Assembly: GCA_030704615.1 (NCBI GenBank)
Contig: CM060732.1
Location: 26,536,001 to 26,600,000, forward strand
Origin: Takakia lepidozioides
Lineage: Eukaryota; Plantae; Bryophyta
Reading direction: 5' to 3'
DNA: 64,000 nucleotides
Shown here piece after piece: positions 3,163 to 63,400 of the stretch (positions within the stretch are counted from its first letter, which is position 1; each line of letters opens with the position of its first letter). Both the position numbers and the translations under genes were made by a program. The notes under the pieces were generated by a model that saw only the letters and a program-made list of their open reading frames with translations, searched no databases and was not told the DNA's origin.

Positions 3163-3496
3163 GTTTAGACCAATCTCCATCATCATGGCTTTTTAAACAC
3201 TCATAAGATAGTTTGACTTTCCACGAAAAAAATGACCCCCCGCCACAAAATCCATTATAACTTTTTATTTTTTATAATAGTGAAAGATTGACCGGACAAA
3301 CTGTCCCCACCTACCCCTGCACCTGCATGCCAAATTGGGGCAATCGAGCCAGATCTTTCGAAACCCTAGAGTTGCTGGTGGCCCGGTGGGGTCCAATTTT
3401 TGGACATGTGTAAGTGTATACCAGCTTGGTCAATGGGTACATCCTCCACTTGGAATCATGAGATCCAACTTAGGGTCGGATGCCACGATCCCACCT

Positions 3497-3864
3497 TGTA
3501 ACACCCATGATCTACACAAACTAGAATAGAAGTACTTCTCAACTTTTTTCCCAAAACAACTCGATGCCTTCTAGGCTTTCATTGCATGTTTATATACCAT
3601 TCATAATATGATTATTTTGACTTTAGAGCCTCAAGTCAAAACTTCATAAAGTCAACTTTCATAGGTTTGACATATTCTCCACAATATGACTTTATCAAAC
3701 ATTTGACCTACTCTCCATAATATAAATATCTTATAGATTTGACTTGAGAGCCTCAAGTCAAACTTCCTTAAGTCAAACTTCCTAGGAACCTTCCTAATTA
3801 TTTTGAAAACTTCTAGGGAACTTTCTTCCTCCATCTAGAATCTTCTAGATTCTACCCTGTTACA
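3497..3864 (-). repeat. 3' LTR of chromovirus
   Basis: TGTAACACCC...TGTTACA; direct repeat of 9016-9377; adjacent PPT (minus strand CAAGAGGGGAGGAT, 3865-3878). Confidence 0.95.
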
Positions 3865-3879
3865 ATCCTCCCCTCTTGC

Positions 3880-9014: not shown

Positions 9015-9015
9015 T

Positions 9016-9377
9016 TGTAACACCCAGGATCTACACAAACTAGAATAGAAGTACTTCTCAACTTTTTCCCAAAATAACTCGATGTCTTCTAGGTTTTCAT
9101 TGCATATTTATATACCCTTTACAATTTGATTATTTTAAAGGTTTGACTTTAGAGCCTCAAGTCAAAACTTCATAAAGTCAACCTTTATAGGTTTGACATA
9201 TTCTCCACAATATGACTTTATCAAACATTTGACCTACTCTCCATAATATAAATATCTTATAGGTTTGACTTGAGAGCCTAAAGTCAAACTTCCTTAAGGA
9301 ACCTTCCTAGTTATTTTGGAAACTTCTAGGGAACTTTCCTCCTCCATCTAGAACCTTCTAGATTCTACCATGTTACA
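9016..9377 (-). repeat. 5' LTR of chromovirus
   Basis: Direct repeat of 3497-3864, with roughly 18 substitutions and a few indels counted by eye. Confidence 0.95.
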
Positions 9378-10224
9378 CACCTCCTCTTTAATCCAGAAAT
9401 TGTTAATTATGGTTTAAATGAAGATTAGGTTGGTATCAGGAGATCAGTTATGCAAGGGGCATTTGTACAAAATCCTGGAGCAGTGCACTTCTCTTTTAGG
9501 AGCCTTAGGAGGCGCTTGTTTTCTTACCATCACAATGTCGTTGTCTAATTGGGTTTAGTGTAATATTGGAGTAACTTCTTTCTGGCTGTTTGCTGCTGCA
9601 GAGAGACAACTGCTACTATGAAAGAGGGGGGACCCTCCACACATTTTCCTACACTCATTGTTATGTTATGTGTATGTGTCAATACACTCACTTGTCTTTG
9701 TGTCAGTGCTTACATGCTTAGGTTTGCTTTGAAGAGGCTGTACTAGTGGTGTATAACTGCTAGAGAGTTGCTTGGATTAGTTGGTTACGAGTCGCTTGGA
9801 TAGATGTCTCCCTTTCGTTTTGTTTATAGTCTTGGCCTTTGGGGCTGGTACAAACAACTGGTTAGTTGTCTCAATGTTTCTATGTTTTGCTCATTACTTT
9901 GTGTGTAGGTTAAATGTTGGCTTGTCATTTTCATTTTGGTACAAGGTGCCTACTGTCGGTGTAATAGTTGCATTGCTACTATAAGAGCTGATTGTTGGTT
10001 TTGGGCTTACTTGGGCTGTAGCAGCAATACTGTTTGTGGTTGTAGGGAGTGCTGATACAGCAGCTTTGTATTGTGGTAAGAATTGACTGCAGGTTTTGGC
10101 AAATGTCAGGCTGAGTCAACACGCGCTTTTGTGCCTATAGGGAGTGCTGCAGCTGTCGCGGACATAGCCGAGAAGAACTCACCAAAAAAATTACCAAAAG
10201 TTACCAAGTTACTGGGAATACCAA

Positions 10225-12218
10225 TTTAAAACAGGGATGGTAAGGAAATTATCCATACTTACAATGTGTCTCTTACCTCAAAAGCCAGAAAAAGAAGACT
10301 AACTAGAGAGTAACCCTGCCAATGGGTCAAGTCCACCGTGTCGTCCTTCCCCAAATACACTTCCATCTGAACATACCTTAACTTGACATTGGCCAAACAC
10401 CATATCTTAATCTCCACCATTTCAAAGGTTTCTTGGCCATATATTGCTGGATTTTGTTGTATTTCCCTTTATACTTCACCATCATTTCATCCACGCTCAA
10501 ATCTTGTTCAGGTGGGTAGAATTTGGCATACAACAATACCTAACAATCTATCAACCAACGTGTCTTAGCCAGTTTGTCAAAGCCAGGTTGTCCACTCACG
10601 TCCACCACAACAGTGTCATTGTCAACAAGGTAGAGGCATCGCAAGATTGCTTTCCACCTGTTGCGGCTCATGATACGCACTGTAGAAGGACACTTGAAGA
10701 GTTTGAACTCTCATTTCTAGTACAGCCTTCTATTAGTTGGGAGTTTTTTCCAAATCCATTAGGATATGGACCGTCAACCATGCCCTCAATTCCTTCACCA
10801 CCAAAAGGTACCAGCTACTCCCACTCTTCCCATGGAATTCAAAGTCAGGGCATAGATGTTTGTCATCCTACAAATTTTGCGCATGACAAGCATCGGCCAA
10901 AACACATTGAAGAAGTCCATAGGCTTATTCTCCTCCAGTCCACACTACCGCAGACACTTCATGCAGCTCTGCCAAATTTCACATGTCGTCTTTGAACAAG
11001 TCATGTGTTGGACAACTATCCCAGTCTTTAGGAAGGGAGTACAAGCCCAATTCGCGAGTGGGCAAGCCAGTGTCAACACAAAATTCATACAGGTCGTGAT
11101 CATCGGTAGCATGAGGGTTGGTTCTAGCTTCCTGATCATGTGGATCAAAGTCGGTATCCGAGGCATTGGAGTCAGAGTGTTCATCACAATCAGAGTCTGA
11201 ATTGTCATCCAAAGTATCTACCCCTAACATATCTTCCACAGAGCACGGAAATTCGCCTTGTATGGCTAAGACATGATTGCACACCTTAGAGCTTACAGAT
11301 TCTACGGTACCATCCCTGAAAAAGGATATGAGGTAGCATTGATCACTTTCCAGCAGAATGTCCCAAGTTCGTTCAATGATTGTGCCATATTTCCACACAC
11401 GGGCGTTGGAGGAGGAGGCTGGTGAAGGATTTGACAAATCACAAATATTCACCCTCACAGTCTGTCCCAGAACCCCCAAATCTTGCATGTTTTGGCTATG
11501 ACCAGCCACATCGCAATCCTGCACTTGAGAATTTCACAGGCAATACAATGCAGACATAAATGAAGCATAGTTAGTACCAAAATCTAGAGGTGGTGGATCA
11601 GCATCATTACCTTGGCTCCTTGCTAGAGCTTTCAAGCTCATTGAGGCTAGTAGCAGAAGATACACAGAACTCAAGCCAAATGGGATCCCTCAACACATCA
11701 TTCACTGCAACCGAAAACCAGTAGGGTATATTCCTTCTTCTTTTCGCTCCACCCAGCCGAGCAGTTCTGCTGCTTGGCGACGCCACAAATAGCAAAAGTT
11801 GCTCGGCTGGCCAAACAACTCAAGCATGACGTTTTAGTGAGAGCAGGTACTCCTCATACAATGCCCCTATGAGTTGAACAACTTGCTCCTCTGAAGCACC
11901 CAAATTTTTCGCCCACTTGGTGATGACATCCAGCAACGGCTCCATGCTCCCTCCTGCTTGGCGTGAACGAGGCGTGAGCGAGACAGAAAACACGAGAAGG
12001 AAAAGAGAAAGGTGGGAGCAAGTGGCTGCCCGACCCGCTGCCACAAAAACCCTAAATTCTCTGCCCTAAAAAATCCCTAGGCCAATCATTTTGCATGCGC
12101 ATGCCTAACGCGTGGGGCCTTCTCACCAAAAATTTCCAAAATCGGTTCACAACTGACAGAGTTACAGCCTGTAGAAAATCTGAAACGGCCCGTTTCGGGC
12201 CTCGCGGACATTTAGGGG
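10225..12218 (-). mobile_element. piggyBac-superfamily transposon, copy 1 (5' end intact, 3' truncated, transposase pseudogenised)
   Basis: Minus-strand translation of 10740-10230 gives IMSRNRWKAILRCLYLVDND...FDKLAKTRWLID...FYPPEQDLSVDEMMVKYKGK...QQYMAKKPLKW(fs)IKIWCLA...MEVYLGK...GKRHIVSMDNFLT. These are the conserved piggyBac blocks, including the first two catalytic Asp. Terminus on the minus strand: TTAA (12219-12222) followed by CCCCTAAATGTCCGCGAGGCCCGAAACGGGCC. Confidence 0.9.
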
Positions 12219-12918
12219 TTAATAGCCGTATAATAAAGGATATCATTAGAGATATCCACAATTATATGAATAAAGCGATGGTTTTCTTAAGTCAATAAGT
12301 GGTTCTTAACAAATTTAATTATACTAACTAGTACAAGGTTTTCGATCATAAAACCATAAGGGAAAAAAGTCACCTCATGGCCTCGAAACAGAAACGTATA
12401 ATTATAGTATATTATTGTATTAATATTTTTTAAGGATTGTTACTATTGTCCTGCAGTTATGCTAATAAGTGCAAAAACAGCTGTCAACTAATTTTAGACC
12501 AGGACCCACCATCATGCCCACCATCATGGCATTTAATAACCATCAAAATGAATCCTGGTTAGGGCCAGGTTCCATGGAATCACCTTCCAAAACATGAGGG
12601 GGTGGTTCCATGGAGACCCTTCCTTAAAATGTCCCACCCTTCTAACTGTCCCTCTATGAGGATGCCAGGCCCGGTAAGGGAAAAAACAAAAATTATAATG
12701 AGAAGACGCAAGGGATGTTTGCGTCTGAGTCGTAGAAGGGCGATTAAGTTGCCGTGACGCCCTTCACAAATATTCCATTTTTCAAATAAGGGGATTATTA
12801 ATTTGGGGCGACATGGAATCAGATCCTTATTTCATGAATGGAAAGCAAAGCAAAGGGTAGAAAATCATGTTTTCCATTACAAAACTCGGTGCACTACACA
12901 TTAGGGGCTAAGGACAAA

Positions 12919-40016: not shown

Positions 40017-40200
40017 TTAACCCCTACACCCCCTGGGGGGGGGGGGGTTTACCTTCGGGGAAAAAATGGACCCTGCTATGTAAATGGGTGTAATTCCCTA
40101 CTGTTTTACAATTAAGAAAATGTGACCGGACAATCTGTGCCCACTTCCCACCTTTCTCTGCACTTGCATGCGAAATTGTCGGCCAATGGTACCTCATCTG
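40017..40200 (+). repeat. Dispersed repeat with a TTAA-CCCC terminus, related to 3193-3340
   Basis: Shared blocks GAAAAAA(A/T)TG(G)ACCC and TGACCGGACAA(A/T)CTGT...CTGCAC(C/T)TGCATGC(C/G)AAATT at both loci. The copy here starts TTAACCCCTA. Confidence 0.5.
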
Positions 40201-52300: not shown

Positions 52301-52548
52301 GTCATCCAACGATTTGTCATCGTGGCGAATCGATTTCTGATTTCTGACGCAATCCGAAACGGGTCGTCGTCCATTAGGGGTTAACCAAGCGGCTAGTCAC
52401 GTAATGGCTCCTCCGAAGAAAAATTGTCATCCAACGATTTGTCATCGTGGCGAATCGATTTATGATTTCTGGCGCAATCCGAAACGGGTCGCGTCGTCCA
52501 TTAGGGGTTAACCAAGAGGCTAGTCACGTAATGGCTCCTCCGTAGAAA
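52301..52548. repeat. Tandem duplication of a ~122-bp unit containing a piggyBac-type terminus (...GTCCATTAGGGG-TTAA) plus its flank
   Basis: Units 52301-52421 and 52426-52548 are nearly identical; TTAA at 52381 and 52508. Confidence 0.85.
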
Positions 52549-54177
52549 TGAATTTTTCTTTTGTATTAACTTAATATTAAAAATACGTAGATATAACATT
52601 AAACCCTAGTAAACGCCTGCAAGGCCCAAAACGGGCCGATGGTTGGGCTTAATTGGTGTCATGGCGCAGAGCTGAGCCTAGTCTTTGACCCTGGAAACAC
52701 AACGTCGTTGGGATCTGCATGCAAGACCAATTGATTACATTCGATCTGAGGGCCGAGATCTTGGGTGTTTTGAGGCTGGGAGGTTGGCTGGGCCGGCTCT
52801 CGCCTCTTTCACTGGCTTCTCTCTCATACACTACCTCGCGCACGTTGCTTGTAGGTTCCCATTTGCATGTTGATTGTGTTGCAGGTTATCATTACAAGTT
52901 TCATTCTCCTGCAGGTTGCCGTGTGGTTGGCTTGCTCTCGCCGTCATTGTTGTCGTGCTGAATCCCATGCGCTTCACGTCTTGTTCTTTGGTTCCACTTG
53001 TTTGCTTACTGGTGTGTTGTCTAGCTTTGTTGCGCATTGCGCCCGCTTGTCTGCTTGGATTCAATAGAGGCGGCGGGGAGTGTCAACTTGTTGTTATAGC
53101 TACCTTCAACACTCCACTGCTCTTCCACACCTAGCTAAGCAAACAGCTACAATTGCTGAATGGGCAAGGGGCCTAGGGGCGAATGAGGAGCAAGTGGCTC
53201 AACTTGTTGGGGCCCTGAACGAGGACTACTTAGTGCAAATGAAATGCCCTGCAATGATCACTTGGCCGGCATTTTCATGTGCCAGCCAATTTCTGCTACC
53301 GAGTAGGTTGAGTGGAAGTAGGAGGGCCATCCTAGTGGGTTCTCTTCCGACATCAATGACCTGCTGAGGAAGTCAGTGTGGCCTGATTTTGTTGTATCCT
53401 CTACAAATAGCCACGTCGATGAGGCTTGGGGCTTTGGCAAGGTCACTGGGTAAGTCCAATTCCTACGCTGCAAGTCAATTTCAAGACCAACCCCCTGTCA
53501 CCTACTCGTTGAGAAGCTCTCAAGTTGAGCACCGTGATGTGGCTGGTCATAGCCAACGCCTGGAGGAATTGGGGGTGGTGGGATTTGCAATTGCCTGATG
53601 CAACCTCTTCCTCCACCCCCCATGTTTGGGTTTACGGCACTGTAATTAAGTGCACATGGGACATCGTGACAGAAATAGAGCTCTGGCTTGTATGTTTTGT
53701 GGGCGTTCACTCAGTATCCTCCCACTTGTGTTAGTTGATAGACCTAGATGTCGATCGCATTATCTTGTTCAGTGGAACAGATATTAGGGGTGGATGCTTG
53801 TGCTATGAATTCGAACAGTGAGGGGTCAGACTGTAATGACTCGAATTCAGATTTTGATCCGGAGGAGGAGGTGAGAGCTAACCTTGCTTCTGTTGTAGAG
53901 CCTAATTTATGGGAATTCTACGTAGACACTAGGGTGTCTAGCCATGAACTTGGTCGGTACTCCCTGCCCAAAATTGGTTGGAGTGGGAGGCAGTAGACAT
54001 GTTTAGGGATGACATGTGGAATAGTAGTGAGCAAACTCTGCCAGAGGTGAGGTGGATTGGGGGGGGGGGGAGCACCTAGAGGAAGAACTCCATTAGGTAA
54101 TGATGCACTGCATGTGGATTTCTGTCCTATACCGTGTAGTGAACTCGAACGGTAAGCGAAAGGTATATTCAAAAGCT

Positions 54178-60466: not shown

Positions 60467-63400
60467 GAGCAGCCTTCCATGTACCCAGCTCACCGTCTAA
60501 GGGAGGAAACCGACAAAACTTGGCCGGGTAGCATGGGGTAGCGGGGCGGCGGAAGAGTTCCTATGTGATAGTGCAGCCCCATAAAATGGAAAGAGAGCTC
60601 GCACAAATTTATTGCAGCATGTACTTGCCTGCCACGTCGTGCTAAACTCAGTCGTACGTAGTACCTCTACCACGACATGCTAAAGTCCAATTATTACTCG
60701 GCCGCCGAGCTCACATGAACCCAGCTATTGTTTTTTAGCACCCGGCAAATTCCTTTTTCTGCGGGCCGAGCTCCTCCCGTGGTCTGATCAGCAGCTGACC
60801 GCTTTGGAGATTTGAACTCTGGAGGTATACAAGAGCATCGTGGAATGAGCATCGATGCATCGAAGCCGTTCGTGCGGAAAGTTGTGGGCCTTGTGTAGCG
60901 GAGATGACCTTCGTTAGGGTTTGTTGGGGCGGCTGACCTTTGTACATAGCCAGGAGCCATTGCCGAAGTTTCTCTCGGGTAGGATTGCGGAGGCGGCTGA
61001 TTGAGCTCAGAGTGACCCGCTGCAGATGTACAAGTAGATCGTCTGTTTGTCTCTAGGTATGTGTGGTGTTTGCCTTGCGATGTGACGTTGGTCCTAGGAA
61101 GACAGGTGCGGTGTCAGGGAAACATCAGGGTTATCATCTTTATTCCAGTAGTCACGTTGATTCGTGGTCATCCTCTCTCAAAATTCTCGTTGGGTTTGAC
61201 TGTTCTTATAAGCTGTGATTTTTCCAGCCAAGCTCTCTACTTTTGTTTTCCTTACGCACTTGATGAGTTGAGATGTTGTATTCTGTTGTGAGTGATTCTT
61301 CTCGCGCGGTGTTATTGTGTGTTTTCTGAATATTAATCCTACGGCGGCATTGTCGAGTTCACCCCACTGAAGCACTTTCCGTGTTACAGATATGGTGTCC
61401 TCTCCTTCCCTGCATGCCTAAATGGAAGCTAGTCCATTTCCCCGGTCTGCCAATTCTTGAGCGGTTTTCATGGGAACGCTGGGATTCGACACCCCAGTGA
61501 GAGATTAACATTTGTTTTGTTGTCTGAATCTCCTAGTTGTCGGTCGCCTTTGAGGATGTCGGGTCTTTGTACACAGAGGTGCGAGTGATGTCAAGTAAAG
61601 CCAAGTAGTCCTGTGTTGTAGTTTGGCCGGTTTTTTGTTGTGGTCTTTAGTCCTGTTGAGGCACAATGATGATTCATCCACTTTTTGGTTGAGAGATTAC
61701 TCGTTGATGCAACCAAAACCTCCTACTCATTCTGAGTGCTGCAGGGCTTTATGTTGGTCAGTATTACCAAGGCATGTGATGAAAGAAATTGTCAAAGGGT
61801 AATTTGCGCCTGATCGCTGTGATGTTACACCTTGGAGACCTGATGCCTTGGGTTTGTCCTTCATGTATTGAAGTAACATGTCTACTAACAGTGCGAAATG
61901 AGGACGTGGGCTCGGCTGGATCCTTTTCTATCTGACCCACTTCGAACTGTGGTTTCCTGAAATTGATTACCCCAGAGGTGGTCCACCGGAAAATTCAGCC
62001 AGCTGATCCCTATTTCGCCACAATCTCTTAAAAGTACTGCCGCATTCTAGGTCACACAACAGACGCGACACGCTTTGAAGCTCCCTCCGAACTTTGGCAC
62101 AGGACTGTTTGTCGCATCTAGAAACAAGGGTTGAATATTCTAAACCGCTTGTGAATGCTGGCTTAGCATGCCAACACTTGACCTGCAGTTTTTGGGAAAT
62201 GGACTGGCTTGTCCATTTCTTCAAGGCGCAGAACTGCGGGAGGGAGTTTAGCAGGCCAATACTTGACCTGCAGTTCTGCCTGGGCAGCCATAATTTCCTC
62301 GTCCCCTTAGCATGAGTGGATGTTGTGAAACTCATCAAGCCCTCAACCCAACTGCTGAATACATCCTTTCACCAGGGTTTGAAGGGCGGCCATCAACCCT
62401 ACTCTGAGGGATAATTAAACAATAAATCTCCACAAACATAGTCTGTGCTGGCTTCCATTCATGGATATGTTCGGATTTGAAAATGTTTGGCCTGCTCACA
62501 CACTTTGGGTGCCTATGTAATCCTCGTTTTCAAAATTCAGCTGAAACGTCATGAGCTACAAACAAATTTTAGCAGTCTTACAAAGTTTCATAATCTTAGC
62601 AGCAATTGTTTCTCATTGAGGGCGAAGAAAATGCTGCTCTTGAAGGTGCATGGAGAGGGAGTGGATGGTAGAAGTTTGCAGCATTTGCCAATTTGGGGTT
62701 CCTATTAAGTTATGGCGTTGGCCTTCCCGTAGTTGTTGTCCTAGTCTTTGTGCATCACTTTGGTGGGAGGGTAATGTTTATTAGATGCATGTTCATGTCA
62801 ATCTCACAATGTGCATGTACAATAGCCTACTGATTAGACAGCATGGTGAAGTGGCTCATGCCCACACAGATTTTTTGTATGTATTTGTATGTGTACGTGT
62901 AAAAATTGTGTATGTAAATAGTAACAACATAGGAAAAGGATAGGTTGGACAACAGAAATTTTATTCGGGCTCACTTTTTTGTCGATTATCCTCCCGAAAT
63001 TATCCAGGGAGAGAATGTAGAGCCACGAGAAGGTGGACGAGTGCAAGCAATTTGGGAAACAACAGGACATGATACAGTGACCAATGTCCCGTGGCTTTCC
63101 CGACTTCAAAGAGACCAAATCAACTGCCCAGTGACCCAGAATATACCACAATAAATATTGGCCGCCTCCTTGTAGCCATAGAGTACTGGAAAACTCCCAA
63201 GTGCTTTATACGAAAGGCGGCCTAACATAGAGAAGGAACAGAAAAGCAGTGAAATATCTTACAACTATAACAACACAAGCACTAACAGCAAATTCAGGCC
63301 CATGAGGACGCTCAGACAGCCAATAGTGGTTTCTTCAGCCTGGCTATGCCAGATCAGAAACTCTAGTCCAAAACACTTTGGTATCATCACAGCATAAAAG

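Follow-up and report, generated by a model that had tools for sequence, protein, structure and literature searches.

The question raised by this locus is whether a piggyBac transposase of Takakia lepidozioides (Bryophyta) carries a chromatin-reading module at its N-terminus and, if so, whether this module and the coding sequence upstream of it belong to one protein or to two. The original prediction, made for a 64,000-nt stretch of contig CM060732.1 (assembly GCA_030704615.1, positions 26,536,001 to 26,600,000; hereafter the window), had proposed that two transposase copies share an N-terminal extension of about 250 aa, comprising a helical block followed by a Tudor-like segment, and that this extension may steer integration. 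The window represents plant-type nuclear DNA, as judged from the presence of two plant box C/D snoRNA genes, snoZ101 (61767–61851, plus strand, 61.2 bits) and snoZ157/R69/R10 (63304–63399, minus strand, 57.2 bits), these two plant families being its Rfam matches.

Two decayed piggyBac elements are present in the window: copy 1 on the minus strand (from ~12222 to ~10050) and copy 2 on the plus strand (from 52599 to ~54000), with a DNA identity of ~65–70% over their alignable parts (Table 1). Their assignment to piggyBac follows from the combination of a TTAA target site with a CCC-type terminus and from matches to the Pfam profile DDE_Tnp_1_7, obtained with two pieces of copy 1 (21.9 and 16.7 bits) that are colinear on the profile. 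Judged from the 5′ ends, TTAA together with a terminus beginning CCC is found in both copies; in copy 2 the TTAA (52599–52602) is followed by ACCCTAG, and this end is homologous to that of copy 1. The similarity of DNA contigs from other copies to copy 1 ends exactly at 12222/12223, and the terminal motif of copy 1 is unique within the window, where none would be expected by chance. A palindromic GGCCC[GA]AAACGGGCC is kept in both 5′ termini (12180–12218, minus strand, and 52603–52640, plus strand), ~20 nt inside the end, and is a candidate for a subterminal hairpin or repeat bound by the transposase.

At the opposite side, no 3′ end is recognisable in copy 1 or copy 2, a search of the window for a 3′ terminal repeat of copy 1 gave none, and a terminal inverted repeat pair along with an intact catalytic DDD triad was found in neither copy. 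These features bear on activity and not on ancestry: the copies are relics. Copy 1 is devoid of the distal part of the core and contains in-frame stops at 10981–10979 and at two upstream positions (given with ORF1 and the ORF2 leader in Table 1), with frame breaks further on, while of copy 2 only the 5′ ~1.4 kb remains, its similarity to the other sequences of this lineage ceasing near 54000. The broken frames were searched piece by piece. Both copies are best described as dead relics, probably of a plant piggyBac lineage that is rare and has two genes.

Table 1. Features of the two piggyBac copies in the window
Feature	Position	Strand	Basis
TTAA target site at the 5′ end of copy 1	12219..12222	-	sequence read
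5′ terminal region of copy 1, begins CCCCTAAATG, contains palindromic GGCCCGAAACGGGCC	12180..12218	-	sequence
ORF1 of copy 1, ~112 codons, stop-broken at 11822-11820, ends with TAA 11609-11607	11607..11945	-	frame, pN/pS, conservation in L001
ORF1/ORF2 overlap, 35 nt; ORF2 ATG at 11641-11639, ORF2 in the +1 frame	11607..11641	-	ATG and TAA aligned in copy 2
ORF2 leader, ~51 codons, stop of copy 1 at 11536-11534	11489..11641	-	pN/pS
Beta-rich N-terminal module (the "Tudor-like" segment), five predicted strands	11228..11461	-	models, fold searches, P0003
Acidic Ser/Asp-rich tract, in frame with the beta-rich module	11129..11212	-	also in copy 2 and P0003
Decayed transposase body with the start of the piggyBac core (DDE_Tnp_1_7 profile positions 75-154), without the 3′ part	10050..11128 (lower bound approximate)	-	Pfam, identity to L001
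TTAA and 5′ end of copy 2	52599-52640	+	homologous to the copy 1 terminus
ORF1 remnant of copy 2	~53128-53453	+	
Barrel remnant of copy 2	53585-53731	+	
Acidic tract of copy 2	53748-53996	+	

Further piggyBac-type ends (TTAACCCCTA...) are observed at 52373–52384 and 52500–52511 (minus strand) and at 40017–40028 (plus strand). The ends at 52384 and 52511 constitute a 127-bp tandem duplication of one end, which adjoins the 5′ end of copy 2, and their subterminal CCCGTTTCGGATT resembles the terminus of copy 1; the end at 40017 was considered as their partner and rejected, given no pairing beyond 10 nt. A dispersed repeat unrelated to piggyBac (9015–9387 and 3496–3874, 89% identical over ~380 nt), with internal sub-repeats at 9123–9185 and 9245–9305, sits just past the truncated end of copy 1.

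A third member of the lineage is provided by a 1.9-kb Logan contig (L001), another decayed piggyBac, whose transposase piece matches DDE_Tnp_1_7 with 59.5 bits (E = 4.6e-16) and is 44% identical to the transposase pieces of copy 1. Its protein P0003, a single 167-aa ORF, comprises the barrel-like segment and the acidic tract, with the first transposase motif following in the same frame. A phmmer search with the 181-aa ORF of copy 1 (10979–11524, minus strand) identified P0003 as the sole true relative among 1.84 billion representative proteins (E = 1.8e-4), the match covering both the beta-rich segment and the acidic tract; three other HMMER matches were discarded as low-complexity false hits. 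The same ORF yielded no match in a word-index protein search and was not on record in an exact sequence look-up, profiles of the barrel and of ORF1 in word-index searches matched P0003 alone and the own ORF of L001 alone, respectively, and two scans of a metagenome collection with single proteins found no relatives. In the protein databases searched, this piggyBac lineage is very scarce, and its sequence set consists of three decayed sequences (copy 1, copy 2 and L001), none of them intact.

Comparison of these three sequences confirmed the coding-type similarity that had been claimed for both copies upstream of the acidic tract and extended it, far above chance, to L001. Indeed, tblastn between copy 1 and copy 2 aligns, in ORF1, the helical block and a second block and, in ORF2, the leader, the beta-rich segment and the acidic tract. 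Both ORF1 blocks are conserved in L001. In shuffle tests against L001, the barrel segment reached z = 16.8 (0/2000 shuffles), the helical block z = 8.9 (copy 1) and 7.7 (copy 2), and the second ORF1 block z = 5.5 (copy 1) and 13.4 (copy 2). The helical block, the YGT...WD segment and the acidic tract all lie where the original prediction had placed them.

The way in which these parts are joined is different from the proposed single extension of ~250 aa, which is not upheld by the reading frames: the helical block lies in another frame, within a separate ORF1 whose stop is aligned in both copies. A conserved ORF2 ATG is located 32 nt upstream of this stop in the +1 frame (at 11641 in copy 1 and at 53420 in copy 2, where the aligned ORF1 TAA occupies 53451–53453), and the frame opened by it continues from the leader into the transposase by way of the beta-rich segment and the acidic tract. 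The peptides formerly read as a read-through linker (YCL*NSQV and YSLRSSQV) belong to this ORF2 leader and do not connect the helical block with the transposase. In L001 the ORF2 ATG is at 760 and the ORF1 stop at 764–766, an overlap within 7 nt, and the two frames again differ. Analysis of substitutions between copy 1 and copy 2, one of the checks proposed earlier, revealed constraint in the transposase frame (f0), but only from ~11690 downwards, where it replaces constraint in f2 and is the sole constrained frame; the helical block, in turn, is constrained only in f2 (pN 0.26, pS 0.96; pN/pS of 0.25–0.37 across windows). Since the constraint switches frame, the frame difference was kept by selection in a once-active lineage and is not a product of decay.

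Additional information on this junction comes from assembled contigs of two runs of different studies (X5 and X6, RNA by guess), which are 99% identical to the window, colinear with it and unspliced. They cover only 10438–11971, the interior of copy 1, with a beginning that precedes the ORF1 ATG by ~25 nt. These contigs suggest that the dead copy 1 is still transcribed from an element-internal promoter. The X5 contigs cover 11064–11971, one of them (908 nt) crossing the ORF1/ORF2 junction without a joint, although contigs as such can miss rare spliced forms.

A single long transposase would nonetheless account for some of the data, assuming that its ~250-aa extension consists of the helical block plus a Tudor-type histone-mark reader steering integration, the parts being joined by read-through, by a short intron or by a programmed frameshift. 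Such an arrangement could explain why, in copy 2, the frame of the helical block is also that of the ORF2 leader, and why both copies have splice-like sequences at matching positions, GGTAA at the ORF1 stop and AG before the leader. Domains of the Tudor, PWWP and chromo-barrel types do appear among the weak structural matches described below. However, the second ORF1 block of copy 2 lies in another frame than its helical block, so that the shared frame in this copy is itself a decay product, and in both copy 1 and L001 the frames of ORF1 and ORF2 differ. According to our own reading of the sequences, the candidate donor is in phase 2 and the candidate acceptor in phase 0 in both copies, so that splicing at the GGTAA/AG sites would give no in-frame fusion; with these incompatible phases and with no joint in the X5 contigs over 11064–11971, fusion of ORF1 and ORF2 by an intron was rejected. 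A conserved programmed frameshift was rejected as well, since the direction of the shift differs between lineages (+1 in the window copies vs. −1 in L001, an offset that indels in the decayed copies could have changed). Considering also that neither Pfam nor PDB profiles give a Tudor-family sequence signal, we regard the long transposase as very unlikely. In contrast, the differing frames, the aligned stop and ATG, the switch in pN/pS, the splice-site phases and the unspliced contigs lead to the conclusion that ORF1 is probably an accessory gene in its own right, whose end overlaps the start of the transposase gene.

The content of ORF1 is a helical block followed by a P-x-x-FS-x-x-[VI]N-x-[VL][IL]R-x3-W motif, the two being in one frame in copy 1 (f2) and in L001. 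Searches of Pfam and PDB profiles detected no protein family for ORF1. The nearest approach is a partial alignment of the helical block (11823–11945, minus strand; 335–493 in L001) to the Pfam family SAM_BAF (E = 0.071, profile positions 55–83 of 88) and an equally weak and partial one to PDB entry 1ci4 (E = 0.098, residues 52–83). BAF is known as an animal protein, and the likeness of the helical block to its residues 52–83 (the C-terminal helices) includes a common W, GA[NS], Q and G-x-L-x-E; on the other hand, ~32 residues align (E = 0.07–0.1), and the helix-hairpin-helix half of BAF is without a counterpart in ORF1. This apparent similarity is a lead only, on thin evidence, even though a transposon-encoded BAF-like helper would, if true, be remarkable.

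Turning to ORF2, all three copies have a beta-rich module that precedes the acidic tract and forms part of the transposase. In copy 1, the uninterrupted 181-aa ORF contains both the barrel-like segment and the acidic tract, along with the ~45 aa that follow the latter; copy 2, in which 26 nt are deleted near 53581, otherwise has an arrangement compatible with the same fusion. The preceding leader is kept in copies 1 and 2 and is absent from L001, where the corresponding frame has stops just upstream of the ATG. Between the two window copies, the values of pN/pS in f0 are 0.26 for the leader (range 0.26–0.59), 0.61 for the barrel segment (range 0.5–0.85) and 0.21 for the acidic tract with the transposase N-terminus, indicating a weaker constraint on the barrel than on its flanking blocks. 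The barrel segment includes W/F-x-YGT-[IV][IV]-x-x-[TS]-WD, in which YGT...WD is kept between distant lineages at ~31% overall identity. Of the features named in the original prediction, the GQTVRV strand is missing in copy 2 (due to the 26-nt deletion) and the F.DG..E portion of the Tudor pattern is kept neither in copy 2 nor in P0003. The aromatic residues conserved in alignment A3 (W/F32, Y34, W42 and Y/W52) could serve in an aromatic cage as well as in a hydrophobic core.

The fold of this module has been approached by sequence profiles as well as by structure prediction. At E <= 10, Pfam offers no family for the beta-rich segment or for P0003, including Tudor, Agenet, PWWP, chromo and MBT; a PDB profile search with the beta-rich segment returned a sugar-binding protein only (E = 1.5), and the ESM Atlas, searched by features, had no row above the threshold. 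AlphaFold2 models of the copy 1 segment and of P0003 show five strands in the same order, at a low confidence (pLDDT of 56.2 and 57.5, respectively) and with both models drawing on the same three-sequence alignment led by different sequences. Foldseek comparison with PDB produced non-significant matches (best E = 0.05–0.1) to Sm, L19, WYL, Rtf1 Plus3, PHF1/PHF19 and the UHRF1 tandem Tudor. A wide PDB comparison by VIA-align (Z <= 6.1 and <= 5.1) listed L19, SGF29, Hfq, Tbtudor, 53BP1, MTF2, BAH, PWWP, chromo-barrel and KOW, values that are not significant, given that a best Z of 7–8 is typical of models for which Foldseek has no clear match. A search of the ESM Atlas by shape was weaker and mixed, with clusters containing PWWP, WYL and Tudor_5 at TM by query <= 0.52. 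Tudor domains among these matches (Z = 4–5.8, Foldseek E = 0.3–0.5) score no better than Sm, Hfq, L19 or WYL, and nearly every structural neighbour in PDB is a small SH3-like barrel, with no class standing out and none significant.

In the structural check proposed with the original prediction, the same five strands and the SH3-like neighbours speak for a barrel, while pLDDT of 56–58, E >= 0.05 and Z <= 6.1 speak against it. On the basis of these models, a small SH3-like barrel is plausible for the beta-rich module, and its identity as a Tudor-type reader is unproven. Likewise, of the chromatin-reader module said to be fused to the transposase, the in-frame fusion is confirmed, but the assignment to the Tudor/royal family is not, no Pfam or PDB sequence match having been obtained.

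What such a module would do depends on the kind of barrel, if it is a barrel at all. A nucleic-acid-binding barrel of the Sm, KOW, WYL or integrase-CTD type would help the transposase to hold transposon or target DNA, or RNA, and would imply no reading of chromatin marks. SH3-like barrels bind DNA in other DDE recombinases, e.g., as the C-terminal domain of retroviral integrase, and Sm, Hfq, L19, NusG-KOW and WYL rank equal to or above Tudor in every fold search; nevertheless, the models are weak, barrel classes are not told apart by them, and the conserved aromatics suit an aromatic cage too, which makes this specific assignment possible yet somewhat unlikely. Doubtful to a greater degree is the view of the segment as a conserved but largely unstructured or partner-dependent piggyBac N-terminus, its strands being an artefact of modelling. 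The low pLDDT (56–58) from three-sequence alignments, a pN/pS of 0.5–0.85 and the failure to obtain any significant family or structure match are in line with it, as is the extreme variability and general disorder of piggyBac N-termini described in the main text of PMC13461360; against it, two models give the same five strands, the sequence has an alternating hydrophobic pattern, and YGT...WD is preserved at the above-mentioned low identity between distant lineages. The boldest version, with the barrel as a royal-family histone-mark reader directing piggyBac integration to particular plant chromatin and with ORF1 as a BAF-like helper that keeps the excised element from self-insertion, is in our opinion very improbable; if true, such a histone-mark reader would be the first case of this kind for a cut-and-paste piggyBac.

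For the two-gene element preferred here, the following layout and mode of action emerge. ORF1 begins ~270 nt (copy 1) or ~530 nt (copy 2) inside the element and encodes a small accessory protein of ~110–150 aa, helical in its N-terminal block and marked by a [VL][IL]R-x3-WP motif. With its stop placed some 7–35 nt after the ORF2 start codon and in a different frame, ORF2 would be translated by its own initiation from one unspliced transcript, possibly via leaky scanning or termination-coupled reinitiation. ORF2 encodes the transposase, in which a beta-rich module of ~80–100 aa precedes the acidic tract and the DDE core, with a 51-aa leader in addition in the lineage of the window copies. The module, predicted to fold as a small SH3-like barrel, may tether the transposase by binding nucleic acid or chromatin, by analogy with the integrase CTD and the chromodomain, and chromatin-guided integration is a hypothesis.

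In general terms, N-terminal domain gains and second proteins of piggyBac elements are already published. According to the main text of PMC13461360, ~4.6% of piggyBac clusters have gained terminal domains, mostly N-terminal, with DNA-binding domains and fusogens as the commonest gains; that main text makes no mention of a Tudor or SH3-like barrel in piggyBac, and a full-text search (piggyBac + "Tudor domain" + "transposase") returned no Tudor-fused piggyBac by title among the matches listed. A few piggyBac families of a red alga and an oomycete encode a second, KolX-like protein (Kojima and Bao, 2022; PMC9587614). The lineage described here resembles these families in having a small accessory protein beside the transposase, and a C-terminal IR-x-x-WP-type motif is common to ORF1 and the KolX-like proteins (by eye, Data S6 of PMC9587614). 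Unlike them, ORF1 has no P2X7-ballast/KolX match, as P2RX7_C was not found in Pfam (E <= 10) and PDB profile searches with either ORF1 block gave no P2X7 chain; furthermore, an overlap of ORFs is not described in PMC9587614. Such a lineage would add to the little-studied piggyBacs of land plants; as long as all copies are dead and the fold is of low confidence, the finding serves as a pointer to a family worth collecting genome-wide.

As a working analogy, the module can be compared with the chromodomain of chromovirus integrases and the SH3-like CTD of retroviral integrases, each a small beta-barrel on a DDE-type integrase that is tethered by it to chromatin or DNA; in contrast to the module considered here, those barrels are C-terminal, occur in retroelements and belong to families recognisable by sequence. 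The closest point of reference, canonical piggyBac (Trichoplusia ni), shares with our elements the TTAA target site, the CCC terminus, the DDE_Tnp_1_7 core and an acidic Ser/Asp-rich tract before the core. It has, however, one gene and an N-terminus that is a disordered acidic stretch of ~116 aa, whereas the lineage in the window possesses an extra leader and beta-rich module (~100–150 aa) before the acidic tract, as well as a second gene overlapping the start of the transposase gene. As piggyBac is a main gene-delivery tool whose N-terminus controls its activity, a natural lineage that combines a folded N-terminal module with a translationally coupled helper would be a model for targeting or regulating this enzyme.
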